A stretch of DNA of 64,000 nt from Bigelowiella natans CCMP2755 (GCA_000320545.1 ADNK01001186.1:1-64000); one strand, 5' to 3'; numbered from the stretch's first letter, positions 4,620-59,420 are shown. Numbers and translations are program-made. The notes: generated from the sequence alone by a model not told the origin.

Positions 4620-5770
4620 AAGTCTAGAGAGAAGTTTTATTTGCCATCTACGTGCTTGCATGTTCACTACAATGAGCAAATTGTCCAGAAACGTGATGAT
4701 TTGCACACATCAATGTGCGCTCGAGCTCATCACCCAAATACTGAGGTTGTACGTCAAGATTCGCATTGTGATTCGCACAAGTTTTGTCGTTGCATGGCTG
4801 GGAACATGGCTACATGTAGATGACCCAACACAATGCAACAGATCGGAGATGTCCAGATACTAGCTTGCCGCCGCTCATGAGCCACACCCCACATTTCATT
4901 TCCCTGCTGTCCGCTGTCGAACAAAATCAGTTGCATCATCAATGTGTGATTTGATTGCCATGTCTTTCTTCTTGCGTTTTCATTTTGTGCAGTCTAGCAG
5001 TGCATCTCTTCTGCTAATTCATCTTTGTGTTCTTCGATCAGCATCTTCAACACACGTGATCCTGTGATCGCACCGTTTTGTTGTTTTTTGCTTGTCTATT
5101 ATTTGACGACTTGCACCCAGTGCCAGCTTGGCTAGCTAGCATGACCAGCTAGCTAGCTAGCTGCAGCTAGCAGTGTCAGCACGCCGCCGCGAGCTCAAAT
5201 GATGTGCCTGCTGCTGTCACTGCGGTGTGCTGAGCATGAACATGCACCTGCTGCATCTGTCCAACAGTGCAACTTGTGGCACTCGGTGCACTTTTGTGAG
5301 TTGCAACCTTGGTGGGAACGGCCAACAAACCTTTCTAGCTTTCCAGCTAGCCAGTTTCGGTGAATGCATGTGCATCACAGGATGTCGAATTTGAAGATGC
5401 TTTGGAGGATCAATGCTGGAATGGGCGAAACCTGGGTGCGAAATGTGCGAACACACCATTGCTGGGCTGGGTCTTTGAGGCATCGGAAAAATGCGAATTG
5501 CTGCGGCCATTCTGGCTAGCTAGCTAGCCGGGGGGCTTGAGCAATGAACGATGAACAATGAACAATGAGCAATGAGACTGGACAATGAACAAGCAATGAA
5601 CAATGATGAAAACCCACACTTCCAAAGTGTGGCAAGACACTTGCATTGCACGAAATGCAGTGCCTCGAACTAGCCTCAGTGAGGACCAACTGGCAAACTA
5701 GCAGGGTTCATGCAAGTTGGCATGACTAGGGAGCATCATTCGCAGATGGCTAGATGGTGGCAACCACTCG
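4620..5770. other. TpA-depleted, CTAG-rich intergenic island 1
   Basis: Between 4861 and 5770 almost every TA lies in CTAG (exceptions CTAA ~5014, CTAT/TTAT ~5097-5101). GCTAGCTAGC arrays at 5131-5171 and 5516-5528. Confidence 0.9.
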
Positions 5771-6025
5771 AATTAGCCTGTAAATCCTTCCTACGACAAC
5801 CACAAATTCGTGTCTAGATTTAGATTTATAGATTCCATTTCGAAACTTCGTGAGCTGGCAAATGCGAAACCATCCGGGATTCGAGTCGAATCCCAGCCTG
5901 AGAATCTCCAATTGTCTCAGATGCAAAATCCTGTCCATTTATTGAAGTCGACTGAGGAAAACCTGTGTCGCAGCTTATTTGCGCTCCTCCGCGGAATTGG
6001 TTCCATACGCCTTTCTCCCTCCGCG

Positions 6026-6750
6026 ATGAGAGCTACTCGCATGATGTCCTGTCCGTCGGCCAGGAGGTGGGCTCTTAAGCTTCAGAAGTACCCGACGGTA
6101 ATTACTAGAGCGCGGCCTAATTTCAATGATGAACTGTAGCAAATATGCGCTTAAATGTCTTCTATGCCGCTCATCTAGCAGCGTTTTGGAGGTCCCGGCA
6201 CCGCAGCTGTTCCTTCTTGCTCCCCGCCACGATGTTGGTTTGGGGTGATTCGTGACGGATGGGAGGAACACATGCCTGAGTATTCGATAACGCGCAAACA
6301 GAGAAAGGTGCGTTCCTTTTTTTTTTAGATAAGCCATATAAATACGACATGCAAATCATGTTCTCTGTGGTGACTCCTCTTTGATCAAAATCGTCACCTT
6401 GTCTATTAATAACAACCCCGTCCCCCCGCCCCCAATTAGATTCGTGAACGAACCGAGGAACAGAACCGCATGAGGACCCGCTCGGCGAAAAAGTGATTCC
6501 CATAATCCTTGGATCTACCAGCTGTTCTTGAGATAGGATTTCGCTTTTTATTCCCCCCCCCCGTATCAGAGAGCAACATGCTCTTTCCTTTCTCGCATAT
6601 AACGCGTTTTATATACCCAATTTTAGTATAAACAAGGCCTTGAAGGCCACCGACGAATTTGTAGGAATGGAGGTAGTTGCCTTGTACATCGATAGGGATG
6701 TAGCGAGCGCTCTTTCACGGATCAACAATAATCGTACGCACACGCGCGCG

Positions 6751-6797
<47 letters not shown>

Positions 6798-6798
6798 C

Positions 6799-6846
<48 letters not shown>

Positions 6847-6963
6847 TCTTGTACTGATATCATTACCTTTTACCACACGCAAAACACAATAGTTTTTCCC
6901 TGATATTTAAGGTCGTTTTTCTCGGAACGGCAGGGAACATGCCCACAGCGTAACCAACCATGC

Positions 6964-7008
<45 letters not shown>

Positions 7009-7135
7009 GATTCATAAACAACCGATTACTTTCAAAATATGATTATATCTTTCCAGCACTCCTAATAAGAGTGTGTGTGTGTGTGTGTATGTCCGTCTGT
7101 TGCCGTGTCAGAAAAGGGGAGAGAGAGAGAGAGAC

Positions 7136-7187
<52 letters not shown>

Positions 7188-7599: not shown

Positions 7600-7635
<36 letters not shown>

Positions 7636-9756: not shown

Positions 9757-9808
<52 letters not shown>

Positions 9809-9813
9809 TTTAC

Positions 9814-9847
<34 letters not shown>

Positions 9848-10348: not shown

Positions 10349-11868
10349 GACTACACAAAAACACAATGCGTAACTATATTTTTCATGCGTGTTCTCTGCG
10401 TACATCGATTAGATAAACGGAGCGGACTTCTTAGGACCTCGAAAGCCAGGGCGAAAAATCGGTGAGGAGAAGAAGAAAAACACGACAAACAGAAGAAGAA
10501 GAAGAAGAAGAAGATAGGAAGAAGAAAGAACATAGGAGTAGCTTTACTGTGGTCTTCCTGCAATTCCCCGATATACATTATGTACGTGGGTGTTTGTGGG
10601 ATATGAGTTTCTACCAAGCTGCTGCTATGTTTTACACGTTTGGTCGAATTTTTTGTGTTCTCTAGGGGACATAAAAAGAGAACCCCCCCCCCCCCCCCTC
10701 CCCTTTGCCCCCGCTTCTCTCCCTTTTTGTTGAGAGCATTTGTGCTTTCAGTGGGCACCAACGCATGCCAACATAACACGGGAATAATCAGCTTGATTAG
10801 ATTTTCCGACATGACGTGTGTGTGGGGGGGGGGGGGGGGGGTGCGCGTTTGATGTGGTGATAACGTACCTATGCCCTTCTGCTCCCCCGCCACAGCAATC
10901 GTGATGGACAACAAGAACTCGGAAGGCGTCGTTGATTTAGCTTACGGAGCGGATGTCATGGTTAGAAATCGCCTCGTCGTAGCAGTAGAAAGCCTCTGAG
11001 AGTGGCTTGACATCGCTCGAATAGCGTCCATATTTCTGCTGCGACACTACTATTCTCCATGGGTTGAACGTCACGCTTTCCCTCCGCCCTCGATCATTGT
11101 TAGATTCATGAGTCCAGCTTCGAGGCGGGGCTCCGTAAGGTGGCGGAGAAGAAGGGCCATTGCACGTCGAAGATGGCAGGGGAGACGGCGAGAGAAGCGG
11201 GTAGTTGAGGGCTAACCGAAGTACAATGCCGTCAAAGCAGCATTTATGGGGCGGAGAGAAGATGGGAGTTATTCTGCCCCCACCCCCCCCCCTCCCCCCC
11301 TCCTTTATGTTCCGTGAGTTCTGGAAATCGCGTGGATTCTCCTTGCGTGCTGATGCGGAGGGGGAGACAAGGATGATACTGATAATGATGATGATGATGG
11401 TGGTGGTGGTGGTGCTTTCGCAGGAGTCAAGCAGCTTGTGTTGACGCATTTCAGTAATCGCTACGCCTTACTCAACTCGGTCGTTGTCAGTCTAAATTAT
11501 TGACCAGTTTTCTCGTGATTCATCTCATGCGAACGATTGGGAAAATCAATCCAACACCTCCGCGCGTTAAAGCACTGGCTCGCATTGTCGGCTGGGGGGA
11601 GATTAACGTACAATGCCATCTTTTGCCATTAGGTGCCTGGCCTCCCAGGTGTTGATCTTCTCGTTGATGAAGCAATGGAAGCTTTCAGATCTGATAATGT
11701 ACGTCTCGATGTGTATTCACTCATGCGCCCTCTATGTGTGTGTGTTGTGTGTGTGTGTGTGTGTGTGTGATTATTTCTCAGCCGTGCGTTTTATTTTTTA
11801 TAACTTTACAGGTTGTGGCTGCGATAGACTTTATGTCGATTCCTATTACCAGAGCCTCCTCGGATTAG
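6026..11868 (+). CDS. RNZ: Ribonuclease Z (short-form tRNase Z, ELAC1/Rnz-like) with N-terminal extension; multi-exon, start codon uncertain
   Basis: Spliced exons give [55 protein letters not shown] (HxHxDH), DIYGPQGL, exosite GPIYKRIKNGEKITLPNG, GADVM-IHESSF..KKGHCTSKMAG, LVLTHFSNRY, and VVAAIDFMSIPITRASSD* (TAG 11866-11868). Confidence 0.92.
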
Positions 11869-12006
11869 TATCTTCGTCGTAGTGATGGCTGCAGTGCTTT
11901 CGTGTGTATGGGCGCATGTCAATAATATATTGGAAGATTAGTATCTTCGTCGTAGTGATGGCTGCAGTGCTTTCGTGTGTATGGGCGCATGTCAATAATA
12001 TATTGG
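11863..12006 (+). repeat. 71-bp perfect tandem duplication starting at the RNase Z stop codon
   Basis: 11863-11933 is identical to 11936-12006 (gattagtatcttcgtcgtag...aataatatattgg), with a 2-nt spacer. Confidence 0.95.
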
Positions 12007-12019: not shown

Positions 12020-12270
12020 TTCTGACGCATGCAAGCACATTACCACCTAGGCTGAGCTAGCTGAGGCCATCATGTGCGCCTGGCTACGCTTGCATGCATA
12101 TCTAGATGTGCACAAGTGTGTGTGTGCGTGTGCGCATGCTAGCATGTGCGTGTCTCTGCCAAATGCTCTGCAGCAGCAAATGCTTTGACATGGCTACGAT
12201 CACACTAGCTAGCTAGCACATACAGCATCGAAGTTCGAGCTGCTAGTCGAAGAAGGCGGGGTGCTTGCTA
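12020..12270. other. TpA-depleted island 2 (short), between the convergent RNZ and ABCC 3' ends
   Basis: Residual TA mostly in CTAG/CTA; gcatgctagcatg and ctagctagctagc motifs. Confidence 0.75.
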
Positions 12271-18901: not shown

Positions 18902-21800
18902 TTAACGAAGCATAGAGCACGTTCAAACAGAAAGAAAAAAATAAAACGTGCCGTGGCAATTTCTTGCCGATGATTACAAGATACCTCACGAATTTCGCTG
19001 GAACGCCTCTGAATCCAACCCTCCAATCTCAACAGCTTCGACACAAGAACAGCATTGAGAAATTGGCCGAGCAGCCCTGTCCGCAAATCGCGCTGGTGCA
19101 TGATTCCCTTTGTTAGCGTTCCCTGCCTCTTTGCAAGACAGTACCCGACAGGGACGAGCACTATCACAAGCATCGCTCCGACCAAGCCTGATGGCCCCAG
19201 GAGCGAGAAGAGGAAGTACACCGACACCATGAACTACCCACACACACACACACACACGTGCACACACACACACACATCAAATAAACAATTAAATAATACC
19301 TAGGTGCATATGAGGAGTGATGATGATGATGATGGATTAGCAGACTACTGCTTCAATGTTGGATTTAGGTTTAAATTCCAGCTACCACGAAACTGTTTTT
19401 AAGAAGGCAAAAGAAAGACGACTGGGATAGATAGCGGGGAGAAGAAGTCGTGGCCATCACATCAACACATTCACGCAGTCTCCTACCTGAATGGCCGCTG
19501 ACCACGAATTCCAATGAAACGACGCGATAAGGTAAGATTCCGCAATGCGCGCAGCATCTAAAGATAGAAAGCTCGTAAGCTTTCCAAAGCTCAACGTTCG
19601 TCTCTCCGATGGCCTGACGTGGCACAGCTTGTGCATTACAGCAGCAGAAAGGGCTAGACGCGTGTGAAAGACGCCGCGTGTGCTGACCATCCACATGCTG
19701 TGTAGGCATAGGCTGGAGACGATTGAGGCGGCGAAGAAGCCGAAGGCCAGGTGGTAGTTCCAGAACGATGATGACGACTGACGGTCGGGGAAGGAAAAGT
19801 CATGGGAGGAATCGATAATATAAGTCATTCATGAGGAGGAGGAGGAGGAGGAGGAGGATGGGAGTGATGTTGTGAATTGGGTGATGATGACAACGACAAC
19901 GGTGATGATGATAATGACGATATTGATGAGACACTACCGTTTGTTGTCGTTGTAGATTTTCGAGGAGCTTGTTGAAAATGATGGGAACGGTGAGATTGGC
20001 CGCCAAGCTAGCTAGCTGCAAGGCTGCAGAGCCCCAAAACCTTCCCTTTACCAGTAGGTACAGGGTGTTTACGAGTGATGGATCACGCTCCTCTTCCTCT
20101 GCGCGAGAGACCTCCAAGCGCCATATTCCTACAAAATTGAAGGCGGGGAGGGAGTCAATAGTCTATAGTTACGTTGATAAATATTCTAAATAGAGAAGTA
20201 GCTGCTTACGTTGGAATTCTTGATGCACTCTCTTCGAATCGTCGCATTCACTGCGCTGCGGCAGGTCCGCAGCCCATATCCGTCCTTTTTGGTAAGCTTT
20301 GTTAAGAGTCGGGTAAATCCAGCAGAACATGATTACGCTGAATACACTCGCTGAATCTTCCCCTCCACGCCCTTTTGCTCCTCCCATTTTCCTATCGGCT
20401 CTTCCGCTCCTGCCGTAGTCTTTGTTGAAGTCGTCATCATTGATGTCGCGGCCTTTCCCTATCCTGGCCATCTTTCCCCCATCCTCGTGAGCGTCGTTTG
20501 CGACTACAGATCGCAGTGCCTCTTTTTTGCTGCTACTCATGCTGCTGCGAATCTCACGCTGGGGCTGTGAGGGCATCATCGCATCTGTCCTGCCGCTGGG
20601 TTCATCATCGACCCCTCTTTCAAGTTTTATTGCAACGACAACAGGGTGGCAGCATAGTAGGAACATCGATGCGACCAACGCGGCAGCATGTACTGCTATC
20701 GCCATTCCCATAACAATTAGTGGCGGCATTCCGTCGATGTCACGGTTTTCATCTTGGGGTGAGGCTAGGCGCACTGAGAGGCCGTGAATGCGGATTGCAG
20801 CGATCACAATGTTAGCCGGGAACCAAAACCACCGTGTTGATCCTGTGTATTTGTTTTATGCGTTGGTACAGATGTTAAGCGCTTTTTATCAGAATTCTAA
20901 TAATTAGTAGAAGAAGAATGAAAAGGAGGTAATTGAACTGGTTCCGACGGGGATTGGTAGAAGTTGCGTATGATTAACACACATAGTGTGTAAGGAGATG
21001 AAAGAGATAGAATAATGTAACTTACTGACAAACAACCTGAAAAGAGGTCAGCAGAAGCAATGAGCCACGCAAATGAAAACAGGGAATATGTCCAAATCAT
21101 CGTCTCTCTGGGAAATGAGGATGGCACTCGGCCATCTAGAGTGACCAATACCACCAACACCTGAATCAAAACATCGTCCGTAATGCGGAAACCGATCGAT
21201 ATATCTCTTGATTTCATATCGGTGTGACAATTCTTCTATTGGTGCACGTACCACAGAGAGGCATGCGACCATGATGTTTACCAGGAAAGACGCTATGACC
21301 TGAGTCAAACACGCGTACCATCATATCATCATCGAAAATCTCTATAGTTCAAACACACTGATTTATTGTGTATGCAAATTTTGTAAGTTAAATTAATGAG
21401 CCACTTTCGAGGAGGAGCATCGTTCCAGGGAACATATAGCTGTTGCCGTCCTTTGCGTTCTCCCCTTCTCTTCATCGATGTCTTCGTCTTGCTCAAGACG
21501 TTGATAGTTTCCTCTTCCAGTAGCACTCTTCCGTATTCTATCCCAACCATAACGAGTAACCCAGAGAGAACAAGAGGGTGGACAAAAAAGAGATCACCTG
21601 TTGAGAATGGAGACAAGAGCTCCCAGGCTTGCCAGAGCGGCAGGAACAGCAACAATGTAGACCAGTTCCAGGCATAGCGGTATCGCAACCTTCTCTGACG
21701 GATGATCGCTCTGACCTTTCCCAGAGCAGATCCCAGTAAACATCAAATACCTCCTCTGCCCCCACTAACTACAGTGAGAGCTCCATTGTTGCAATCCACC
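12304..21800 (-). CDS. ABC transporter subfamily C (MRP-like, TMD0-TMD1-NBD1-TMD2-NBD2); multi-exon, 5' end approximate
   Basis: L0 segment [22 protein letters not shown]; TMD1 exons; NBD1 [47 protein letters not shown]; TMD2 [13 protein letters not shown]; NBD2 [59 protein letters not shown]. Confidence 0.93.
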
Positions 21801-22043
21801 CGGCCCTGAGAAAATGCTCGGAAAGTTATACGTCGAATCACCGGAACCACTGCGACAACAACAACAACAACAACAACAAATTATGATTTCCAGGACAAGT
21901 TTATCTCCTAGGAAATAATACCCGGAAGGATCTAAATATAGATCGAATTGGAAACAGACAAATAAAACGGCGAACAACAACAAAACAATATCGCGGCCTG
22001 TAGATCTACTGGAATCTTCCCATTTTGCATTTTCGTCAGGTAG

Positions 22044-23981
22044 TGGCGCAAGTCACTGGTCGCAACCCGTAAAACCACGGTAAAAACTCACCAAGAAAGC
22101 AAGGAAGTGCTCCATTGCGGAATGCGAAGGTTGAATCCAGGAGCACGGATCAGCTCGTACGTAGTTGGGGCACATTTGCACTGCTATTTACGTCGTCGTC
22201 ATGGACAAAATGCGTGTCGTTCAGTCATAAATGAATGCGATTCGTCTGGAACATAGGTGTGTTCTATGAGAGCGTCTGCAGCAATCCATACAACCCAAAG
22301 AGTTCCCCCCTCCCACCCCTATTTTCCACCATCTAACCGCCCTGTTATCGAAACGAAACGGGTCCACACAAATATGATTTTTTAGGCATCTCTTCACAAC
22401 TTTTTTTGGTTTTTGCAGCAATACTATGCTAATGCTTGATGCTTACACCGGAAGTGTCAAGAAGGCCACGCTCAGCACCGTGGGGCATGTGGTAGATGCA
22501 TTCGCCAACAATAGTGGGGAAATGAGAGGCATCATCACGGAGGGAGAAGAGAACAGCCGGTTCGACCCTGAAACAGTGGTTAGGACACCTGCATAAAAAT
22601 AATACAAAGGAACCAAAAGCATAACGCCTTACTGTATTTTCGTGTTTGAACGCTGTTAATCATTTATCTTCGTCCCCCTCTTCTGATAGGTTGTTAACAT
22701 TGTACACGGCGAATTCTTCGCGGGCCATGGTTATGTCGTAGGCCCCAGTCAGCGTATCACATTTAGCAAGTAATTGGTTCAACAATGCCGCGACTAATAC
22801 GTCGTATCCCAAGCAGAAGAAATACGATTCGTATTACTGTACTTAGGGTCATGTGTGTAGCCTCTTCAAGTAAATTAAAAACGAAGAATTCGTTCTTCCT
22901 CTTTTCATTTCACAGAAAACAGCATAAGTATTCGAAAATTTGTCATATCCACAAAATCGCCTTTTGTTGCTGTCACGCACGACATAGATATCTACATCTT
23001 CGAGATGTTAGTGACATGTTCGGGTCGGAGGATGAGGTGCTCTTGTACCGGGAAAATAGGACAAAGAGAGAAAGTGGAAGACGTAGGTGTGTGTGTTTAA
23101 GTGAGGTAGAGAGAAAGGGCGAGAGAGAGGGGGGGAGAAAGCGAGAGAGATAGTGGGGGGGGGGGGGAGGGGGGGAGAGATTCGTGACAACCAACTCCAT
23201 CATAGTTATAATGACCGCCAACACCCTCATCAAAACATCTTAGCAACAACGAAAGTTAATCATTCCACAACGGATATCATATAACTCATGATGGTCGTCA
23301 GGCAAACACACCAACTTCAAATACATCGAGGAATGCCAGTTTGGAGAGCGAACGAGCCCTTGGAAGTTACTCTTGGAGCCCTTTCCTTGGTAAATGTTGG
23401 TACCAGAACACCCACCTACGGCGTCATCGTAGCGGAAAACAACGGAATATTGGTAGTAGTGACAACTAATCCTGATGCTGTTCCAACAGAAAGAACAAGG
23501 AGTGTTTTCATTAAATAGTAATAATCATCGTTGTCATCATCATCGGTTGCAGCCGCAGCAGATTCCAGAGGATTGGACTCCGTTCAGACTTACGGTTACA
23601 TTAATTGTTAGGAACAACCACACAATCCATAGTGCTACAGAGAAAATCTAGCAATAGAAAATGAAAGATGTTGATGATGCACTACGATGATGATGATAAT
23701 GATAGCTCCAAAGGAAGCTAATCAAGCCCTTCCTCCCCCCCTCCCTCGGATGTGATTTTCTTACCAAGAGCAAGGAAGCACTCCAGCTGATGGCCACTCC
23801 TCGCAAACCTCCCCTTCCTCCTCTTCCTCCTTTGCATTTTGTGCTTCACCATTTGCAGGATATGTCGAAGACGCTGGCGGAGCTCACAAAGGACAGTGCT
23901 GACAGCCACCAGCTCTCGGTACTTCTTTTTAGATGTAGCAGCGTGCTAGTAGGTAGTGGCCACTAACAGCAGTCGTAGTAA

Positions 23982-25284: not shown

Positions 25285-26496
25285 GCCCCGTTCCCCCTGT
25301 GCTATGATCCTACTGGCCTTGCCTTCTTGCTTTGGCGTTAAAGCTAATGATAGTGATGAAGTAGCAAGCACCAAATCAATATCAGTGCCCTAATCCTGAT
25401 TGAATAAGACGAAGCGCGAGAAAAAAATTAATAAAACACACACGCAAAACAAAAAACGGATGCACATGTTCGTATTCCCAACACCACCTAGCTCCTCCTG
25501 ATGCAGTTACTACTACTCTTGCAATGAGGTTTTCCCACGTTTCGTCACCAGAAACCATTCCCATTACCGTTACACATGACGAACATCATCCCCATCGCCA
25601 CGATATGACCAACAGGTACATCGTTACCGCATCATGGCAAGTGCAACGTCAATCCCTCGCAGTAGCATAGCATACGCCAAGTGCGCTCTTGGGCTAGCTT
25701 CTGCGCATGGCATTGGAGGGGTGCGGCGGGATGAAAAGGCAGCCGTTCAGCTCTACACAGAGGCTGCGGTGCTGGGCCAACCTCGAGCAGAATACTTGCT
25801 TGCAAGATGCTACGAGGCTGGATTTGTGGTGTCGAAAGACTGCTCCCAGGCCCTTCAGTGGTTTCAAAAGGCGGCAAGGAATGGCAGGGCTTGCGAGGCG
25901 ACCAAGCGTTCAGCTATGCGCTCCCTTTCCCAGCGCTACGTCGACTTCTAGAAGGTGAGCTGCACAACCAGCAACTGCATTGCATTTCTCTCGCTATGAT
26001 AAAAAGAGCTGTCCTGCTACTGCATTGAGGTGTGCCGCAGAGGGGCCACAGGAGATAGAAAAGGAGGGAGGGGGAGACAAATTCACTTGTTCTTTTTTAA
26101 GAATTGAATTGTGAGGTGCGGGCAGGTTGTGATATCGCCGACGTAGGTCCATAACGTGTTAGCTATGATGCTTCTTTCTCTTGAAGCGCCTACTGCCTCA
26201 TAGCCACCTAAACGTATCGGACGTAAGAAGAGGCAACAATGTGAAAAATTAAAGGCACTAGAGTTATTGTTAGCACCTGTGATCAGGTACAAAAAGTGCT
26301 TGAGCGCGATTTAAGCCAATTGTGGATGCTGCATACCACGCTGTTAAACGAAGCGCTGTTTCCTATGAAAAGTTCTGACCGTCCTCGAACGCCCAGAGGA
26401 AGGCCCTTCTGTAATCTCACAGAAGAACAAAAACTAAAACGCAGCCTCAAAAATCGGTCGAAAAGACGCTTCACAAAGTGCGGCATCATCACGTGA
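22044..26496 (+). CDS. Multi-exon protein with C-terminal Sel1-like repeats; N-terminal part of unknown family, and joining of the upstream exons is tentative
   Basis: 25634-25951 holds clear Sel1 repeats (AKCALGLASAHGIGGVRRDEKAAVQLYTEAAVLGQPRAEYLLARCYEAGFVVSKDCSQALQWFQKAA). Phase-compatible GT-AG exons at about 22044-22156, 22419-22578 and 22691-22730; a further GT-AG-bounded candidate exon at about 23859-23918; last exon ends at TGA 26496. Confidence 0.55.
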
Positions 26497-26731
26497 TAAG
26501 CACAAATCGTTGTATTTATTTTGAAACATGATGATACTGCTACGAAATCTGTATTTCTCATACAAACTGCACTAGAAGAAACACATGCACCCTCTCAATT
26601 CTTCATCCATGCATAAAAGCATAGCACAACATACATAAGAGAACTCTCCCACGCGCGCACACAAATAATTACAATTCTCCATCAAATGTAATACAGAAAT
26701 ACGTTGAGTATTATATCTATTATTACTATCA

Positions 26732-26775
26732 TTCTGCTTATTAATATTATGAGTTCTGCTTATTAATATTATGAG
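26732..26775 (+). repeat. 22-bp tandem duplication plus (TAA)n in the 3' flank
   Basis: ttctgcttattaatattatgag x2, followed by (aat)n. Confidence 0.9.
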
Positions 26776-26780
26776 TAATG

Positions 26781-26811
<31 letters not shown>

Positions 26812-40529: not shown

Positions 40530-42786
40530 CGAGCATGTGGACATGAGCTATACAAGCAATAACCACCCCTAGACCACACCGAAAGCCGAACACGCACACA
40601 CAGTGCAAGCGATGTGCGTGAATGCCGCTAACGTCACTTATCGACAGACTAGAGACGAGATCATGCATGCACACTGTGATGAATCATGCATCTCTAGATC
40701 TAGCATTGCACATGATCGAGAGTGTCATGTGTCTAGTTGTAGTTGCCAAGATCAGCATGTAACATGGATGATGACACAAACTTTTTGTGCATCTGTTTCG
40801 TCAGGGCTAGAGGGCCTCATCCGTGATGGACACAGCTAGACAGTGCCACAATGACACAATGCACACCAGACACGTCCAGACATCGTGTTCACAGAATCGC
40901 GTTGTCTGCAATCGACATCGTGTTGTGGTGTTGAAAGAGTGTGCAGAAAGAAACTGTGATGATCTGCTGATCGACAACGTTTCCAAAGTGTTGCACGACA
41001 CTTGCAAGTTGTGAAACGCAGGGCCCAGCTGAGCCAGCTGCTGAAAACAGCGAGGACTGACTGGTGAAACCAGCATGATTGAAAAATGGTGTGTTGGCAG
41101 GCCACCAGGACACAAGCAAACAGCACGACGTGCCAGCTGACGTGTGGCGTGCAGCGTGGGCTGCTGCTGTCGTTGTGCGAACAACGTGCTTGCAATTGAG
41201 AACCCACGTTTCCAGGTTTGCACACGTCGTTGATGTGAACGAAAACGAATGGATTGATTTTGACACAGACATGACTTGAGACAATCTTGCAAGTGCATCT
41301 AAGTCAGGGGAAGCCCACAACAGACACAGCAATGGCATGCATGATGCACGGGGAAAAATCCAAAAAAAGTCAGGAATTGGCTTCCAGCAGAACACCATGC
41401 TGTGCATTGTGATTGGAGTTGTGTTGCTTGCATGCGCATGCTTGCTGCATGTTGACATGTGGCTAGACAATGAATTTGAACTCACATCGCAGGCCCGCAA
41501 CACTCGCTGCTGCGCTAGCTAGCCAGGCTGCTGCGTCATCGCAACATTGAGATGATGACATGATGACGCACTGAAAAATGAAGTCGAGACAGCGCCCCCT
41601 GTCTCGACTTTCTGCATCACCTAGTCACAGAATGCTCGTTGTTCGAACTGATGCCAGTTTCGAGTGCCATTCACATGCTGGCATGGCTCCCTGTGCGATG
41701 TGCGTGCAGACTTGGACGCGTGCTTTTGCATGCAGCCAAGCGCACACGTGGATTCATCAACAATTTTTCATCGCGACGTCCATCTCGACTTTCATGCATT
41801 TCCCGCTCCACTGCTGCATGCTGATCTTGGCATCTTGGCGAGCAGCCGACCCCTTCTGGCCTTTCATTTTTTCCCGCCAAACTGCATGCTGATCTTGGCA
41901 AGTGGCCTGCAAGTCTGGAAGTGAGAGAAAAAGTGCACGTGTCAATGTGTGCACGTGTCTCCAATCTGGTGTGACGTGTGATCGCAGTCCCAGCAGTGAG
42001 GAAAGGTGGTCAGAAAGAACCACGCAACCCCACTCAAGCACTGCTCATGCTGGAGCGGACACACGCGTGATCTGTCAGGGTCTAGGTAACTCAAGATTCG
42101 TGCACGTTGGTTCGCTAGTTCGGCATGCCAACGCAAGACATGCGCTCTGCAGTGCTGGTGCTGCAGCACGAGCACTGGCAACACGCATTGCAAGCTGAAC
42201 CAGCTGGCCAGTGAAAGCGCATCATGCGCAGCACCGGCAAAACTGAATGCACTTCAAGCAGGCTAGCAGGACTGGAGTCAACAGAGCTAGAGAGGCGGGG
42301 CACGTCTAGCTGACATCGCATCGCACCGAAAGAATTGTGTGATGTTGCCGCGTGTCCACAATTGCGCACCCACAGCCGTGTGCGTCCACTTTTGCCAAGA
42401 AATTCCTGAACGAAAGCTCTGTCAAAACGGCTGTCTGCGACCAGGTCACCAGAAGGTTCACCGTGAACAAGAGCTCTGGTTTTGAAGGAGGTGGAACTAT
42501 CCGTGAAGGAGGTTGCACAGGCTGTGTGCGAACCATGCACCAATGACGTGAGCAAGGCAGGCACAACCTCATCCAAGAGAGAGTTGTTGAACTTTGCATT
42601 TGAAATGGGAAAACAACATTGCCAAATGACGGTCAGTGACAGCAATCCCGGTGTCACATCGGGACAAAACATCGGAGAAGAAGCGAGGAGATCCGGTGCC
42701 GCATCACAATTCGCGAAGCTTCGGTTGTCGAAAGAGGCGTTGCACAACCCTAACATTTTCTTGGAAATCACCCAAAATGTTTCCAA
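40530..42786. other. Largest TpA-depleted island (5), between the chlP 3' end and the EFL promoter
   Basis: By eye, 15 TpA in 40801-42786 (11 in CTAG) and none in 40839-41299; abrupt return of TA at 42787. Confidence 0.95.
41581..41624 (+). mobile_element. Possible Helitron 3' terminus
   Basis: Perfect 12-bp hairpin aagtcgagacag-cgcccc-ctgtctcgactt, then a 10-nt spacer, CTAG and a following T. Confidence 0.35.
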
Positions 42787-43320
42787 TTAATTCAATGCCG
42801 ATAATTTATTGTCCATTAAATGATAATGAATCTCTTTTTTGTACATCTACTCATGTAACCGATCAATTAATTTTTTATTTAAAAAAATATTTGTAAAGAA
42901 CGATATTATGGAATGAAGAAAGTGAGTTTTGGCCCCAGATATGCGCTTTAACCTTTATGATGTGAAAAATTATAAAATTTAGGCATCATATCCACTTGTA
43001 CCAACCCAAATGTGACAAATATAAATCTTACATATAATTTATCGGCCGCGATATTAACTCTCGGATAAAAAGTATATTAGAATATCACCGTGGCTTCGCA
43101 TCCATTCGTAGCTGCGCGATAATACTTATCAAAAACCAACTCGAGTAGAACCCCACCCCTTGTTACACACCACCTATTCACATACGTCTCTCTTTACTTA
43201 GTGATGTGACAACTTCACAACTTCATCGCAAATATATAATGGTTGTTTTTCTTTTGAAAACTGTTTCATTTAACGATTTGTTTGAAGCTTCTTTAGATTC
43301 GTTACATCTTGAGCTGCGTT

Positions 43321-43353
43321 GTAAATGATCCATTTTCTTTTTGTTTATGTTAG
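43321..43353 (+). other. Probable 33-nt 5'-UTR intron of EFL
   Basis: gtaaat...pyrimidine tract...gttag, ending 9 nt before the ATG; an in-frame stop upstream supports ATG 43363 as the start. Confidence 0.4.
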
Positions 43354-43362
43354 ATCTGAACT

Positions 43363-44904
43363 ATGGAGAACCGTTTGGCAGCAGACCCAAAGAACCTTCG
43401 AAAGGATGTCGCTGATAAGCCTCACCTTGGCGTTGTCATCGTCGGTCACGTCGATGCTGGAAAATCCACCACCACCGGACACCTCCTTTTCGAGCTCGGT
43501 ACTATGGACGAACGTGCAAAAGCCGATTTGATTGCGAAGGCAAAGGAAATGAAGAAAGAATCCTTCGCCTTCGCTTTTTTCATGGACAAGCAGAAGGAGG
43601 AGCGCGAGCGTGGTGTCACAATCTCTTGTACCACCAAGGAATTCCACACTACCAACTTCCATTACACCGTCATTGACGCTCCTGGACACAAGGACTTCAT
43701 TAAGAACATGATTTCCGGTGCCTCCCAGGCTGATGTAGCCCTTCTTATGGTTCCTGCAAAGAAGGGAGGTTTCGAGGCTGCTATCCAGAAGGGAGAAGGT
43801 GGTGATGCAGCAAATAAGGGTCAAACCCGCCACCACGCTGAGCTTACTAAGCTTCTTGGAATTCAGCAAATCATCGTGGGAGTCAACAAGATGGACGAAA
43901 AATCTGTGAAGTACGACCAAGCACGTTACAAGGAAATCAAGAAGAACATGCTTAGCATGCTTAAGCAGTCTGGTTGGAAAATCAACGGAAAGCTTACAAA
44001 GGAACTTAAGGAAGCTGGTAAGAAGAAGGGACCTAATCTCATTCCCGTCATCCCTATTTCCGGTTGGTGTGGAGACAACCTTATCGTTCCTTCCACCAAG
44101 ATGCCATGGTTCAACAAGAAAGGATGGACCGCAACCACTCCATCCGGCGTCAAGACCAAGGGAGAGACTCTTTTCCAGGCTCTAGATCAGTTCGTTGAGC
44201 CTGTTACACGTGACCTCGAAAAGCCTCTTCGTTGCCCACTTTCAGGAGTTATTAAGATGTCCGCTGGTACCGTCATTACTGGCCGTATCGAACAGGGAAA
44301 ACTTGAGAAGGAAATTAAGACCAAAACTGGTGTCACTGGTACCCCAGTCAAGTTCTTTCCTTCTGGTTTGAAGGCAAAGGTGTTCTCGATCGAAGCACAC
44401 CACAGATCCCAAGCTAAGGCTGTTGCCGGTGATAACGTCGGTATCTGCATTAAGGGTCTACCAAAGGGTGTTTTCCCTAAACCTGGTGAGGTTATGACGC
44501 TCCTTGAGGACGACTCTGGTCTTGGTAAGACCGAGTGGTTCACTGTTGACGTGAAGGTTCAGGGGCATCCTGGAAAGCTCAAGGTAGGATACACTCCTCT
44601 TGTCCTCGTCCGAACTGCCAAGTGTCCTTGCAAAGTTACCAAGATCAACTGGAAAGTCACAAAGGCTAACCAGAAGCTAATGAAGTCCAAGAAGGAACTT
44701 GATAAGTACAAGGAAGAAGAAGCCAAGTTCATTCAGAAGGGAGATCTTGCTTCGATTACATTTGAGCCTCAAATGCCTTTTGTCGTGTCAAAGCTTTCCG
44801 ATTGCGAGGGACTTGGACGCGTCGCTGTCCTTGAATCTAACTCTCTAGTTATGATCGGTAAGATTACGGACTGCAAGAACAACCCAGTTAAGACAGTTTC
44901 TTAA
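43363..44904 (+). CDS. EFL: Elongation factor-like GTPase (EFL, EF-1alpha paralogue); coding region intronless
   Basis: GHVDAGKSTTTGHLLFELG, KESFAFAFFMDKQKEERERGVTI, DAPGHKDFIKNMISGASQAD, VNKMD. The AFAFFMD..KEFHT pattern and the insertion in FEAAIQKGEGGDAANKGQTR fit EFL rather than canonical EF-1alpha. Confidence 0.93.
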   Translation: MENRLAADPKNLRKDVADKPHLGVVIVGHVDAGKSTTTGHLLFELGTMDERAKADLIAKAKEMKKESFAFAFFMDKQKEERERGVTISCTTKEFHTTNFHYTVIDAPGHKDFIKNMISGASQADVALLMVPAKKGGFEAAIQKGEGGDAANKGQTRHHAELTKLLGIQQIIVGVNKMDEKSVKYDQARYKEIKKNMLSMLKQSGWKINGKLTKELKEAGKKKGPNLIPVIPISGWCGDNLIVPSTKMPWFNKKGWTATTPSGVKTKGETLFQALDQFVEPVTRDLEKPLRCPLSGVIKMSAGTVITGRIEQGKLEKEIKTKTGVTGTPVKFFPSGLKAKVFSIEAHHRSQAKAVAGDNVGICIKGLPKGVFPKPGEVMTLLEDDSGLGKTEWFTVDVKVQGHPGKLKVGYTPLVLVRTAKCPCKVTKINWKVTKANQKLMKSKKELDKYKEEEAKFIQKGDLASITFEPQMPFVVSKLSDCEGLGRVAVLESNSLVMIGKITDCKNNPVKTVS

Positions 44905-45099
44905 TTATGATGATAGCTAGTGACATTGGAATTGTCTTATGCACCATGTTATTACCTCTTAAAATTGCAATTTGATTCTATCAAAAATGAGAATAAGATT
45001 ATGTCGGACGCCTGCAACCATGTTACGCCAGTCGAACCCTCGCGCAATTTGGACGCTCCTTCAGCGAACCCGTCGCTTTTTGGTCATGAGCGGGGCGCG

Positions 45100-46560
45100 G
45101 TGCAGAATGTAAAATGCGGTCATGCACAAAGGTCCTGCATTCGATCATCATGCATGGATTGCAGGCTTGCGCACGCATAGCATGCATGCACACATGTTGC
45201 ATTTCGTTTGTTTGCAGGCACGTGCAGCCATCTAATGCAAGCCATCACAATTCACATTGGGCAAACGCGCACATTTTCACAAAATCACATCTTGCCTACT
45301 AACTAGCCAAACCGTGTAACATTGGGCTGTGTGACGAGCGGGGCCATGATGACATGTGCGCACATGTGGCCAGGAGCAACGCGCATGTGCACGGAATCGA
45401 TGTGATGCAAGTTTTGTGTTCAATCTCGTTCTAGTTTTCGAGAAATTCCAGCTTCATTGCCCAAAATTCAGCCATCTAAGCTGCGTGCCATGCAAGCAGG
45501 AGTTGCAGGAAACTGTTCCTCTGAGCTGTTGATCAAGACCCAGCTAGCCAGCCTGACATGCAGCACAAGGTGTTGGGCCCAAATCCAAAATCTCGAGGAG
45601 ACACCTCAGTTTTTGTGTTTTGAAAAGTGGGCAAAATTGGGGAATCAGAGTTTTCACTTTTTCAAGAAAAAGCAAAAGCCAACTCTCCCATTGGCACGAA
45701 TGCTCAGAAGCGCGCACGCACAGCCAAAAACGATGAAAAGCTGCTGAAAGCACTGGCTAGCTGGTCAAACGAGTCCAGCAGGAGTGTCAATGTGTCGACA
45801 TTTTGTGTGTTCCCACGTGCCGCACACCGAGAATTTTCACAAATGATCAAATTCAATTGAGCCAAATTGAAGTGCGCAATGACAGCTGCACGTTGAGCAA
45901 AAAATTGTCGAAAAACATCATCTAGTTTTTGAGACAGCTCACTTTTTGTGTCGATGTTGCACATTTGGGCAAGATGTGATGCATCGTACGTGCTAGCGTG
46001 AGTTTTCTCGCGGTAACCACAACGCACTAAAAGCGCATTGCGCTTTTGTGCAGCTCTAGAGCTAGTGTGCCTACAATGATGCATGCTAGCATGCAACAAG
46101 GTCATCGATCGCTAGCTGCTAGCTAGCTAGCTAGCGCAGATGCGATCGATCACACCATAGATGCATGCGCACGTGTCGTACGTACGTAGTAGTAGTCATC
46201 GTGCGCTGCTAGCTAGCTAGTGTGTACACAAGTTCAATGGATCGCTAGCTAGGTCGATGTCGATCGAGTAGTGATGCACGTGTGGTGCGTGCGCACGTGC
46301 ACGCGCAAGCAGGGCATTGAATTAGCAAATGTGCACAATCATCATGCACATTATTGCTAGCATAGTCACAAATGTATAGGTACACCACATCTTGGAATAA
46401 CTTTGTTCTAGACTCATATGATGTTGCTTCGCGGCAAATAAGAGTTACGTACTAGTCAAGTAGTAGTGTGACCTATGCAAAGGAGATGATGGTATCATTC
46501 CATTTAGACCAAACGCATGCCATTCGCTGATAAGCTATATGCAATGTCTAGATGTAGCTA
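45100..46560. other. TpA-depleted island 6, between the convergent EFL and ASPH-like 3' ends
   Basis: 45481-45985 is AT-rich but has only 3 TpA, all in CTAG; (GCTA)n arrays at about 46110-46255. Confidence 0.93.
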
Positions 46561-46749
46561 GCAGTTTATGTGCGGCCCCATGGAGAGTGCGACGTCCTCC
46601 AACTTGACGTTGCAAAATCAAAGTGGGAACGCACCTTCGTATCATATTAAGGGCGTCAGGAAAATGGGGGGAAAAAAATCATGCACTAATAATACATTTG
46701 TTGGAATATTCGGCACTATTGCCTCCCCTATGCGACATCGGTTATGTGC

Positions 46750-47029
46750 TGTTTTCACACGCAGCGTGGCAAGCCAATCTGTGGATGTTCTCTAATATAT
46801 GTTCCCATGCGCAGAATGGTAAGAATTGGAGGCACACACACACACACACACACGTCTTAACACTAGCACCTGCTCTCGGTCTTCGGGGGAGAGATGTGGA
46901 TGCCAGATGTCCAGCAACAGCACCACACGATCCTCCTGAGACTCGTTCCAAACCTGCACTCAAAGATATCGATGATTAAATAACATTATCCTACTACTAC
47001 TACTACTACTACTACTACAACTATACACG

Positions 47030-50299: not shown

Positions 50300-50344
<45 letters not shown>

Positions 50345-53429: not shown

Positions 53430-54867
53430 TCGGAAGGAAGCGATGCCGCTAGTTCAAATCCGGCCTCTCCATTCTGCTTCTTCTCTCGTCACAAAGTACT
53501 CACGCCAGGCACACGTTATTTAGATCTATCGGACGACTCCACTGTTATTCCATGAGAGCTCCGGTTCCGTTTTCTTGGGACATTCTTCCGAAAAAATAAA
53601 TATAAATAAACCTTAGTCATCTGTGCGACAACTATCACATTTCCGTTTTTCGTGAGTGTTTTTTAAGGGGCCGTTTCTAAATCTAGGGGCCTCTCTTCGT
53701 CAGACGTACAATCTCTTTCGTCTGTAAACAGGTCAACTTTGCGCAGAATCCCGGAACAGAGAAATTTGTCAGTTTTTTTGGTTAAACAGGGGAAATAAGA
53801 TCTTATCAACATTTTTTTGTTAGTCATTATTTATGGAAGTCAATTCTAAAAAGTGATAAAAGTCATTACCAGCCTCTGATATGAAATTTATTGGCTGTTA
53901 CTCACCACAAAACACTTCAGGCAAACAAACTCCAAAACCTTACACACCCAAATACCGACGCCAAGAAAACCCAAAAAGGCCATCCATGAGTTAAATTGCG
54001 TCTGTGTTTTTTCTTGTGCGACAGACTTTTAAAGTGGGGGAAATAATTAGCTCAGGATTTCCCATCTTTTGATGTCGTTGCTTTTTATTTAAAGTAACTT
54101 GTTTGCTTACGACAGGTATTTATTGTTGGCTATGAGGTTTTATTGCTTCCAATTTTCCAGATAATTCCTTGAACACAATCTTACGTTCGAAACTTGCGGT
54201 TGCCTTGCCAAACCTGTCCTTTTCCCATCCTTTCAGACGCAGGATACCTTACAAAAGAGAGTTCGAATCTGAGAATGTATGTAATTTTACGGAAATTAGC
54301 AGAAGCGACATGATTTTTAATCCTCAATATTTTATTATACGGCCAACTTTCAAGTCAGGGGTGCGGCTTCCGAAAATTCGAATTGGGCGATAGTTCTCCA
54401 GAAATATTCAAAATAATCCTGATTCCTACTAAAATACACGGCAAAATAAACATTCATTTATCTGTCATCACGGAAATAAATCTGGAATTCACTGAATTCT
54501 TACTTTGATCTATTTAATTGCAGAAAAACACAACTGATTCCGCTGTAGTCCCCTGCCTCTACACCTGACGGAAGAGGTACCAGAGTACGCTGTAGTCAAG
54601 GGTTTCAGGGGGCTAAAGTAGAGACTAGAGTGGTATGCTCCTTTCCATAACCAAATTTAATGTGATTATCCTGAAAAAAAATGGAAAAAAGGCAAGAAAG
54701 CACGCTGACTGACTTCTCAGGCGGTCTCCCGGTTTTAACCAGCATCTGTTTTCCCCCCCAAATTGTACATGCAGGGGTCGTGTAGTGACATATTATTAAA
54801 GTGCTGGAGCCAAAACGAACGGCATAGAACTTGAGGGCACCGGAAGGAGGGTAGACGTGGCAAGTGG
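53430..54867. promoter_or_regulatory. Divergent promoter interval (ASPH-like / MYB)
   Basis: AT-rich, microsatellite-free, normal TA content. Confidence 0.55.
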
Positions 54868-56034: not shown

Positions 56035-56066
<32 letters not shown>

Positions 56067-56681
56067 GACGCTGTTACCATCATCTAATCCCGCAGTGAAC
56101 CAAAAACTTGCGGCAGCAGCCTCCTTGCCAAGCATACCACGACTGCCTGCCCTTTCTCTTCCGTTTCTTGCGTCAGCAGCAGAAGGGAGGAGAAGCGTCG
56201 ACCGCAACTTCGCTCTCCACCGGCACCAGTACCAGCTCACTGCTGCAGATGCGAATACCACGATAACAATGTCGGCTATGGGTGGTGGCATAAGAGGGGG
56301 GCAGATGGCAAAGGGGGGGCTCCTGGCCATATCATCGTCGTCGTCGTCGTTGTCCTCGTCTTCAAACGCAAACTACCAACGCCAAAACCTCGCCCTCCAT
56401 CCCCATAGTGCCCTTCATCAGCAACCGCAACCGTCGCCAGCGCGGCACTTGCTGGTGCGCCCCCATACCTACCATTATCAAAAGCAGCAGACGACGCAGC
56501 TGCTTCGCCCCCCTCCCCTACCATGCTCTTCCGCATCATCCCCGAGCGGCAACCCCACAAATTCCAACGGAGCTGTGGTAAAGGCCGAAGGCGGGCTGCT
56601 GTTCTCCCATGATGGCGTTTACGATATGGGGGGTCATTGTGGTGGCAACAGCATCGGTAGTAATGCGAACCCCTACCTAGC

Positions 56682-56716
<35 letters not shown>

Positions 56717-57735
56717 TGATGATGATGATGATGATGGCAGGCGGGGAGGGCGACCTCGGCCAGATTCACTCCATCATGTCGCCAACCAAGAGACGGCGAG
56801 TGAGGGAGCGAAAACCGTGGAACGAAGAGGACGACGAGCTCCTCCACAGCATCGTCAGTCAGCACCCGGACAAGAAGAGGATTAAATGGGCCGGCGTGGC
56901 GAAGTTCTTCCCTGGCCGCATTGGGAAGCAGTGCCGCGAGCGGTACCCCACGTAGAAAGAGGAGAGTGATCCTAACCCCGCAGGCAGCCTTCTTTCTTTC
57001 GCGCTATAATCGCATAGAAAGCGTAGCGAGAGGGTGCCATCCTAGAGCTAGGGTCAGTGGTGGTTCTCATATTCACCACGGCGACCCCTTTCTTTCCTCC
57101 ACATATCGATCGATCTCTATCTAATATGCATACTCCTACGAGGCGGCTGTCATAAGGGGCCGCATTGACACTCGCAACCAATGTAACCGATATTTATCCC
57201 CCCCCCCCCCCCCGCCCCTCTCCACCATCCATCCATCAGGTGGCATAATTTGCTCAACCCAACCATAAAGAAGGGGCCGTGGGGCAGCGACGAAGACAAC
57301 ATCCTCATCGAGGCTCATCAGCGGCATGGAACAAGATGGGCTAAAATCGCCAAGCTTCTCCCCGGCAGGTGTGCGGATCGTTTGCATCTTTCAGAATATG
57401 CTAACGACGATTTCTTGTCCCCCACCCCACCTTCGCCTTCACTGCTATATTCATTAAAAATTGTCGGAAGCTGCCACCCGTCATATCACACTATGCTACG
57501 TTGCCTTATGCTCGTTAGAACGGATAATGCCATTAAAAACCGATGGAACTCGACCATGAGGCGGGTGGCTCTACAGCAAAACCAGAAACAAACTGGGAAG
57601 AAAAGTCGTAAGGGTATTCTTACTGTTTTTATCAATGATAGTAGTAAATTTTAGTAATAGTAGCGTCCATAATCTTCCTGCTGTTTTTATTCAATTTTTG
57701 GGCGGCAATCAATGTTGACTACTAGCACACACGTA

Positions 57736-57776
<41 letters not shown>

Positions 57777-57970
57777 CACGTTAATTTTATGCCAACTACG
57801 CAGCGAATAAGCGGCTTTACTGGTATTGCTGGAGCATTGTACAGAAGGGCAATGAAAGGAGCGTCTTCCCGGGGGGCTGCAACTACGACAATGCACAGGA
57901 CGATGGTTATAATCCTACCCAGGAAGGAGGAGGAGGAGGAAGAGAGGGGGTGGCTCCACAACAGCAGTAG
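54868..57970 (+). CDS. MYB: Two-repeat (R2R3/c-Myb-like) MYB transcription factor with a long low-complexity N-terminus; 3' end approximate
   Basis: PWNEEDDELL..WAGVAKFFPGRIGKQCRER|WHNLLNPTIKKGPWGSDEDNILIEAHQRHGTRWAKIAKLLPGR|TDNAIKNRWNSTMRR, joined across GT-AG introns. Confidence 0.93.
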
Positions 57971-58172
57971 CAGCTCGGTTCGTGGTGTATGACATTATGG
58001 AATACATATCCACAACGACGCCTTCTTCCCTGCCCGTTTCTTGAATATTGATATCTTAGATGCTCGATACTAGTTCTGTTCATACGTAATAATACCCTCT
58101 TCCTCGTTGATTCGTTGGGCGAGTCGCTTCTACTCGACAGCTAAATGAGGGGTGCCCTGTGTGTGTGTGTGT

Positions 58173-58221
<49 letters not shown>

Positions 58222-58559
58222 CGTTTGCGTGCCATTGTGCCTAGAGCAGCTGGTAGCAAATACAACTCGATATTAGCATTTTCACACTCGACTCATAAGA
58301 AGTTGAATCATTTTACGACACCGGACAAATAAAAAGTTCGTACTTCAATTTTGCGAGCGTTGTAGGAGCGCGGGGTTTCCACTATTTTTAAGAAATTTGT
58401 TTGGCACTTCCCCGCAATTATCATATCATTTTTCACCAAAAACGCATACGAGCCACCGGCATTCACGTTTCTTCCAGCCGCCTACCACTGGGTATTATGG
58501 CTCACATTGAGTTAGTGAGACTTATTCGTGACTTTTGTAAGCTGTAGCTATGAAGACAC

Positions 58560-59420
58560 TTTGAGGACTCGCTACGCCAGAATGGCATTGAATGTACATT
58601 AGATCGATTCCGTCATCGTCATGCGTCATCATCATCATCATCACTAGATCAATGCATCATACAATTTAGAGACGATGGATACCTTTCATATGTGTGCGCG
58701 TCTAGACAGATCTAGAGATCCCGGCACGGCTGCGCATGACAGCGGGTTGTATTACGTAGTGGCGGTCGTAGTGCTAAAGTGGGCTGCCACATACCATGCT
58801 AGCATGCAGCATTATCAGCGCTAGAGCGCCCTAGCTAGCTAGCCTGGTAGCTACGACGCGATGTGTGAGACGGATGTAATGAAATGTTCAAACGAACGAC
58901 GCGATGTGTGTACGCTGCGAAACGAGCCATACCCAGCACATAGCATAGCTAGCTAGCTCGGAAAACGTTATGTCATTATGCCACTGCATCGCTAGATCGC
59001 GCATGTGCAGTATTATTAGAGTAAGTCGCCCATCGCATTGCGCTAGTGCTAGATTATTACTGATGACATATAAACTGCAGCATGTAGCATCGCATCGATA
59101 CGATTTACACACGCGCACGTATGTGCATGTACATGCATGCGCGGTAAAATAGCATTTCCAGACTTAGTCAGCCATACTAGCTAGCTAGTATAATAAGTAA
59201 TGAAGATGCATAGCGATGAAATGAGCATTGAAAAATATAAAAAGGTATCATCTCTCGATCGTATCGCGCTGGTTGCTTCATCTGGCAGCTATGCTAGCGT
59301 CATTATTTTCTGGTCTAGTGCTAAAGTGGTGATAAATTGTTCACCCTCGCTAGCTCATGAACAATTGCGCATGATTCCTTTAGTGCACCGTATCGCTTTA
59401 CCTTGCACTTAATAAGCTCT
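58560..59420. other. TpA-depleted/CTAG-rich island 7 (partial conversion), between the convergent MYB and 6-Cys gene 3' ends
   Basis: gctagctagc arrays and a mixed (YR)19 tract at 59106-59143. Confidence 0.8.

Follow-up and report, generated by a model that had tools for sequence, protein, structure and literature searches.

TpA hypermutation in Bigelowiella natans and related systems

In mutation-accumulation lines of Bigelowiella natans, 231 of the 302 nuclear point mutations were located in two integrated viral regions, and 230 of these 231 were A>G or T>C changes, nearly all of which occurred at TpA dinucleotides and at a rate about 1000 times that of the background (Mettrop et al., April 2026, bioRxiv 10.64898/2026.01.13.699255). 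In this silent viral DNA, exons, introns and intergenic DNA were mutated alike; genome-wide, 124 clusters of at least 3 kb were found which are TpA-poor and rich in CpA+TpG, domains of reverse transcriptases and DDE endonucleases are over-represented in the TpA-poor predicted genes, and an ADAT2-like deaminase has been named as the candidate enzyme (bioRxiv 10.64898/2026.01.13.699255). CTAG, untranslated regions (UTRs), promoters and gene orientation are not mentioned in the preprint (bioRxiv 10.64898/2026.01.13.699255). The present work concerns a 64,000-nucleotide stretch of B. natans DNA (ADNK01001186.1:1-64000, referred to hereafter as the window), in the spacers of which there are three islands (A, B and C) and one mini-island where TpA has been erased. 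As hypermutation of this kind has already been described for B. natans, the islands most likely represent additional cases of an established phenomenon. Beyond what is reported in the preprint, they indicate that an entire spacer, between a transcript end and the promoter which follows, can be occupied by a small, non-coding and saturated island without recognisable viral or transposon content; that CTAG is spared and CTA/TAG appears to be converted more slowly, which is a context rule that can help in telling candidate enzymes or protective modifications apart; and that CTAG-rich palindromic patches are present at gene 3' ends. If the filling of spacers by islands is general, then the targeting would be broader than "foreign DNA".

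The islands resemble the hypermutated viral DNA in that they occur in the same organism, show a reciprocal loss of TpA and gain of CpA+TpG, are strand-symmetric, and are regional with sharp limits. However, they are 1-2 kb in length, below the 3-kb cut-off of the published clusters, and they are saturated, hardly any TpA being left in them for further mutation, with no coding remnant and no detected viral or transposon ancestry. Fungal repeat-induced point mutation (RIP) is similarly a regional, dinucleotide-specific transition hypermutation, which gives rise to islands of altered composition and is interpreted as a defence of the genome. However, RIP runs in the opposite direction to the change seen in the islands (TpA lost, CpA/TpG gained), as it turns CpA into TpA and so increases TpA; further, RIP needs duplicated DNA, whereas the islands have no duplicate in the window beyond a 26-nucleotide (nt) motif. 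Deamination by ADAR and ADAT enzymes, as in the editing of A34 in tRNA and in the DNA base editors derived from TadA, likewise converts A to G with a preference for a 5' T (U), the natural site of TadA being U-A-C-G. In the case of the islands, however, the substrate is genomic DNA at the scale of a region, and TAG is used less than other contexts here, in contrast to ADARs, which prefer a 3' G.

Composition of the TpA-erased islands

Sliding windows, combined with a search for runs lacking TA, served to call the islands, the TAs lying inside CTAG being set aside (coordinates in Table 1). The window as a whole has a GC content of 47% and an overall TpA observed/expected ratio of 0.79. For total TA, this ratio is 0.38 in island A (composition stretch 4620-5773), 0.16 in island B (40640-42750) and 0.26 in island C (44950-45986), and the corresponding values for TG+CA are 1.67, 1.72 and 1.61, so that all three islands lie within the limits used in the preprint, viz. 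a Rho value of at most 0.43 for TpA and of at least 1.52 for CpA+TpG (bioRxiv 10.64898/2026.01.13.699255). CpG is undisturbed in all three of them. A run of 673 nt in island A (5101-5773) contains no non-CTAG TA where 39 are expected, only three such TAs are present within positions 40800-42745 of island B, and island C has a left part of 320 nt which is partly depleted and a right part of 509 nt without any non-CTAG TA. The mini-island, which is 115 nt long, similarly has no non-CTAG TA where nine are expected; it contains three CTAGs and its TG+CA observed/expected ratio is 2.04. It is clear that the islands are real and far beyond what chance produces.

The numbers of TG and CA dinucleotides are 129 and 112 in island A, 229 and 224 in island B, and 91 and 111 in island C (binomial p of 0.30, 0.85 and 0.18, respectively). 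TG and CA have been gained equally and therefore the change shows no strand bias and no tie to the direction of transcription. The composition signature and the strand symmetry are thus both plain features of the islands. If the approximately 190 conversions in island B are undone, then its GC content, as estimated from the counts, becomes about 0.43 and its TA observed/expected ratio about 1.1-1.2; the promoters and the island-free spacers in the window, with GC contents of 0.33-0.45, are near to this back-converted island.

Limits of the islands in relation to transcription units

The islands have sharp edges at transcript ends and at a promoter. In island B the transition is sharp on either side, taking place within about 40 nt. 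The stop codon of the preceding gene, chlP, is followed by 370 TA-normal nt and then by the island, which starts at 40561, and the right edge (42751-42788) lies about 380 nt upstream of the first 5' exon of EFL, this interval of about 380 nt being a very AT-rich promoter. Island C starts (at about 45001) some 45 nt past the ends of the EFL transcript contigs (44953-44958). In the case of island A, the right edge at 5774 is also sharp, and on the left side there is a graded shoulder extending from the AASS stop codon (4602-4604), with the start within about 70 nt. Every real island is located in DNA between transcription units, and the spacers concerned all hold gene 3' ends. No islands are present in the introns or the divergent promoter gaps of this window, and their absence from the intronic space, which is much larger than the spacers, is clearly non-random. 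No match to a 35-nt probe taken from the middle of island B was present in transcript or metagenome contigs, which is weak evidence, as a probe from the last AASS exon was likewise unmatched in such contigs.

Probable origin of the islands

The explanation to which we lean, with slightly more belief than doubt, is that the TpA-to-TpG/CpA hypermutation of B. natans has run to saturation in silent, tolerated spacer DNA and has thereby given rise to the three islands and the mini-island. Judging from their composition, the islands have most likely been made by the published process; their DNA would have been silent or foreign. The process would act on whole silent regions and on both strands, the candidate enzyme being an ADAT2/TadA-like adenine deaminase acting on DNA, and it would begin with TpA in most contexts, proceed at a lower rate at CTA/TAG, and reach CTAG only at the end. 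If silent dispensable DNA, which is probably old inserted or repeat-derived DNA, can survive only in those spacers which hold gene 3' ends, then islands would be seen in such spacers and would be excluded elsewhere: the divergent gaps are short promoter DNA, the introns are transcribed, and selection would presumably keep such DNA out of promoters. The 3'-flank pattern would then indicate where DNA of this kind can sit, and it should not be interpreted as a mark laid by transcription termination.

A hint of repeat ancestry is provided by the 26-nt motif which is common to islands A and B. All 24 of its specified bases are identical in the two copies and none is expected in shuffled sequences; to the right of the motif there is weak similarity over about 100 nt (z of about 2.6), within which a CTAG in island A aligns with a CCAG in island B at two sites. 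Apart from this, islands A to C were found by blastn to have almost no sequence in common. Searches with Rfam and for tRNAs identified no RNA genes in the islands, and a scan of viral contigs with a degenerate motif found nothing.

Several observations weigh against the derivation of the islands from silent, inserted DNA. Among 12 open reading frames (ORFs) of the islands, none contains a Pfam domain, those of viruses and transposons included, and a HMMER search with the 223-amino-acid ORF of island B against 1.84 billion proteins retrieved no real homologue, the two matches obtained being tandem-repeat artefacts. No copies of the islands are present elsewhere in the window as judged by blastn, by exact words in purine/pyrimidine space (none was longer than expected by chance) or by tblastn, in which every ORF outside the islands was compared with them, and no terminal repeats, inverted ones included, were found at the islands. 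Further, the spacer is filled almost exactly from the transcript end to the promoter, which fits a position- or chromatin-directed process equally well, and the CTAG-rich patches described below follow the orientation of the gaps, which hypermutation of silent DNA does not predict.

If the DNA which separates a poly(A) site from the following promoter, or from a facing 3' end, is silent and exposed, then it could be edited due to its position or chromatin state, whether it is foreign or not. Apart from the chemistry of base J, this corresponds to the interpretation given in the preliminary description. This alternative, which we regard as a serious possibility albeit a rather unlikely one, agrees with the coincidence of the island edges with transcript ends and a promoter, with the lack of islands in introns and divergent gaps, and with the lack of any sign of foreign origin in the Pfam and homologue searches with the island ORFs. 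Its other predictions concern the distribution of the islands and the patches among the gaps.

Islands and the orientation of gaps

The gaps compared comprise seven which hold gene 3' ends (five convergent and two tandem; referred to as 3' gaps) and five divergent gaps. In the preliminary description it was claimed that an island is present in all seven 3' gaps. Three of these gaps indeed contain a strong island, and the mini-island is located in a fourth, but the claim does not hold for the RNZ/ABCC, Sel1/Tctex-1 and MYB/6-Cys gaps. These three are not TpA-depleted, their non-CTAG TA observed/expected ratios being 0.84-0.88 (0.88 for the whole MYB/6-Cys gap), and their lowest 300-nt windows have values of 0.50-0.63 versus 0.50-0.78 in the divergent gaps. 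The divergent gaps are TA-normal, as had been described, with non-CTAG TA observed/expected ratios of 0.67-0.81 and no 300-nt window below 0.50. Two intronic (TA)n runs (9763-9826 and 50309-50340) are likewise intact, in agreement with the same description, and the (TA)n runs of at least six units are all (12 of 12) located outside the islands, the patches and the gaps. The suggestion that the islands mark termination or untranscribed zones can be retained insofar as they all lie between transcription units, but they are not present in every 3' gap.

The Sel1/Tctex-1 gap (2.1 kb), whose convergent orientation is verified, contains 79 TA and 4.8 CTAG per kb, and it contradicts the 3'-end rule outright. 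Within this spacer, positions 27100-27620 form a patch of ACGT/TACG/CGTA words, in which TpA is not lost and CTAG is not clustered. The strong islands are present in three of the seven 3' gaps and in none of the five divergent gaps (Fisher p=0.16), and if the mini-island is also counted the numbers become four of seven and none of five (p=0.07); the per-gap TA observed/expected ratios do not differ between the two classes (Mann-Whitney p=1.0). The restriction of islands to 3'-end spacers is thus true in the window, but as a rule of orientation it does not reach significance. For editing directed by position or chromatin, it is a difficulty that TA-normal DNA makes up the Sel1/Tctex-1 spacer and much of three other 3' gaps and that the true islands separate the gap classes no better than the above p-value of 0.16, in a comparison which is confounded by gap length and promoter constraint.

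If the pattern had no cause other than chance, then the three islands would merely happen to sit in the larger gap class. The Fisher test allows for this, and when the placement of islands is weighted by spacer length, the probability that the 3' gaps receive all three is about 0.3. However, the islands themselves are far beyond chance, none is present in the much larger intronic space, and the CTAG-rich patches do separate the gap classes; hence we regard this possibility as very improbable.

The preliminary description had also drawn an analogy with base J, which is a DNA-level feature of kinetoplastids at places where transcription units end. In an explanation of this kind, a base-J-like modification of thymine at TpA by a TET/JBP-type hydroxylase would mark termination zones, and the T>C changes would be a side effect. 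The islands do lie at 3' flanks, and T>C and A>G changes at TpA are indistinguishable in the sequence because TpA is its own complement. However, base J is a modified base and not a mutational scar, it is found at start regions and telomeres as well, and the termination zones here are not all marked: TpA is not depleted in three of the five convergent gaps, and one of these three lacks any related feature. To our knowledge, no base-J enzyme or modified base is known in B. natans, and in the literature searched there was no link of Bigelowiella to JBP or 5-hydroxymethyluracil. Two papers on kinetoplastids state that J marks transcription starts also (PMC4150806, PMC4344527), and the targets of the published hypermutation are viral inserts and not terminators (bioRxiv 10.64898/2026.01.13.699255). 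The analogy with base J is thus unsupported by this sequence, and we consider an explanation based on it to be highly doubtful.

Long runs of (TA)n, (CA)n, (GA)n and poly-G are very frequent in the window as a whole, almost all of them inside genes and apparently in introns. None is present in the strong islands or the CTAG-rich patches and a few are found in other 3' spacer DNA; the divergent gaps contain one poly-G/C run and one poly-A/T run.

CTAG-rich patches and a 12-nt palindrome

Four patches (D, E, C2 and F in Table 1) are rich in CTAG, in (AGCT)n runs and in GCATGC. They contain 82 TA per kb, 30 of which per kb are in CTAG, and they are TA-rich because they are packed with CTAG; all four fall outside the Rho thresholds of the preprint. 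These patches are probably what was taken for islands in the other gaps in the preliminary description. Clusters of CTAG are present in six of the seven 3' gaps and in none of the five divergent gaps (Fisher p=0.0076), and the density of CTAG is 4.8-19 per kb in the former versus 0-4 per kb in the latter (Mann-Whitney p=0.0025). The patches thus separate the two classes of gaps except for Sel1/Tctex-1, which is a 3' gap without a patch.

Five exact copies of a 12-nt palindrome, CATGCTAGCATG, are present at 12135, 33626, 33979, 46082 and 58795, where fewer than 0.4 copies are expected even if one mismatch is allowed. All five are located in 3' gaps, viz. four gaps classed as convergent, for two of which the orientation is verified. 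A variant of the palindrome in which CTAG is replaced by CTGG occurs at 41674, inside island B. The sequences flanking the copies are not conserved. In addition, the patches have 29 non-periodic 14-mers in common, where about one is expected, and patch E contains a perfect 18-nt inverted repeat at 34106-34159.

The clustering of CTAG in 3' gaps and the confinement to them of all exact copies of CATGCTAGCATG favour the direction of editing by position or chromatin, and if editing is directed in this manner, then the patches and the palindrome might serve as nucleation or boundary elements. The fuller proposal, viz. hypermutation aimed by position or chromatin in which the CTAG/(AGCT)n and CATGCTAGCATG patches are the nucleation or boundary elements and CTAG is perhaps protected, e.g. 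by adenine methylation, is in our view unlikely; if true, position- or chromatin-aimed editing nucleated at such patches would be the more interesting outcome. The same observations could be explained if selection maintains the composition of the TA-poor DNA and of the CTAG/CATG palindromes because these serve a function, e.g. as terminators or insulators. The excess of CATGCTAGCATG and its presence in 3' gaps only, the 14-mers common to the patches and the sharp edges of the islands would accord with selected elements. However, neither the non-conserved flanks of CATGCTAGCATG nor the near-absence of common sequence among islands A to C is in keeping with selection, an equal gain of TG and CA which matches the loss of TA is what a mutational process predicts, and such a process has been directly observed (bioRxiv 10.64898/2026.01.13.699255). 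Due to these considerations, selection on composition appears to be quite improbable.

Beside patch D, at 11866-12005, there is a tandem duplication of about 70 nt in which all TAs are intact. A mixed pyrimidine-purine run at 59106-59143 was considered as a fossil (TA)n run. This interpretation is not convincing because the TpA process cannot make CG units from (TA)n, and the run has many CG units and has kept two TAs. It is more likely to be a compound microsatellite; compound CG/CA/TA microsatellites are common in this genome.

Sparing of CTAG and the order of contexts

Of the 39 TAs which are left in the island cores, 32 are part of CTAG, and most of the TAs persisting in the shoulders belong to CTA/TAG contexts. 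Within the islands there is an excess of CTGG/CCAG, with a value of 1.62 versus 0.75-1.33 for the other NTGG words. This excess, together with the CTGG variant of the palindrome in island B, suggests that CTAG is also converted, only much more slowly.

The published mutations can be compared with this order. When the events in Table S2 of the preprint are tallied for scaffold 10, the A>G changes number 32 at TAA, 22 at TAC, 3 at TAG and 34 at TAT, and the T>C changes number 33 at ATA, 17 at CTA, 30 at GTA and 35 at TTA (bioRxiv 10.64898/2026.01.13.699255). For scaffolds 10 and 146 together, 23 of the 226 events are in the TAG/CTA context, which is thus under-used but still occurs: it accounts for about 10% of the published new mutations versus about 16% of the TpA sites in control DNA of the window. 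Due to these 23 events, the rule that a 3' G blocks editing is ruled out as an absolute cause of the sparing of CTAG. It is possible that conversion is blocked on either strand by a C located two positions 5' of the edited A, in which case only the palindrome CTAG would be spared; alternatively, CTAG may carry a protective modification. On scaffold 10, CTA and TAG, although they are strand mirror images, differ in their numbers (17 T>C versus only 3 A>G). This imbalance may be due to the gene-strand composition of the viral insert, or it may be a real asymmetry.

Genes and transcripts in the window

The genes were identified by Pfam searches over about 80 ORFs, in which AASS, ABCC, Sel1, Tctex-1, chlP, EFL, MYB and ASPH were confirmed, and the labels TCAIM, phosphatase, 6-Cys and that of the last gene were not. 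The match of the C-terminal exon of ASPH to Asp_Arg_Hydrox places this gene on the minus strand. Gap orientation is verified for seven of the 12 gaps, all three gaps with strong islands being among them. The signals of gene models based on codon usage and of a k-mer classifier of strand were too weak for placing the unverified genes.

Table 1. Coordinates of islands, patches, gaps, motif copies and genes in the window
Feature	Position	Strand	Remarks
Island A, TpA-erased	4669-5773		AASS>RNZ tandem gap
Island B, TpA-erased	40561-42787		chlP>EFL tandem gap
Island C, TpA-erased	45001-45986		EFL/ASPH convergent gap
Mini-island	33879-33993		Inside CTAG-rich patch E; gap labelled TCAIM/phosphatase
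Patch D, CTAG/(AGCT)n-rich	12040-12250		RNZ/ABCC convergent gap; not TpA-depleted; 8 CTAGs in 200 nt
Patch E, CTAG-rich	33440-34260		25 CTAGs in 667 nt
Patch C2, CTAG-rich	45987-46561		Between island C and likely ASPH 3'UTR; 20 CTAGs in 640 nt
Patch F, CTAG-rich	58640-59450		MYB/6-Cys gap; not TpA-depleted; 20 CTAGs in 805 nt
Divergent gaps	21800-22050, 28414-29001, 37374-38568, 53430-54867, 61065-61649		TA-normal; CTAG 0-4 per kb
Sel1/Tctex-1 convergent gap	25955-28044		Counter-example; no island, no CTAG patch
26-nt motif, copy in island A	5620-5645	+	Can form a short stem-loop
26-nt motif, copy in island B	40981-41006	+	Partner of the island A copy
AASS	Last exon ends 4601, stop codon 4602-4604	+	Pfam on C-terminal exon
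RNZ		+	C-terminal motif LVLTHFSNRY only
ABCC		-	Pfam
Sel1		+	Pfam
Tctex-1	3'UTR 27612-28044	-	Pfam and transcript contig
chlP		+	Pfam
EFL transcription unit	43130-44958	+	Pfam, protein match, transcript contigs
ASPH C-terminal exon	46795-46959	-	Pfam Asp_Arg_Hydrox positions 138-157 of 157, E=1.5e-4
MYB		+	Pfam

In the EFL transcription unit, the coding sequence extends from 43363 to 44904 and two transcript contigs, which come from a strain 98.4% identical to the window, end at 44953-44958. The start site lies at or before 43130, because the contigs place the end of the first exon at 43144 and the acceptor of the 5'UTR intron (43145-43353) at 43353. The window is nuclear DNA of B. natans or of a very close strain. 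The EFL ORF (43363-44904), which has no intron, shows 100% identity to an MMETSP protein, with the next-best matches being from the chlorarachniophytes Chlorarachnion, Amorphochlora and Lotharella, and a transcript contig of 946 nt which bears Tctex-1 maps to 28557-27612 at 100% identity, the UTRs included.

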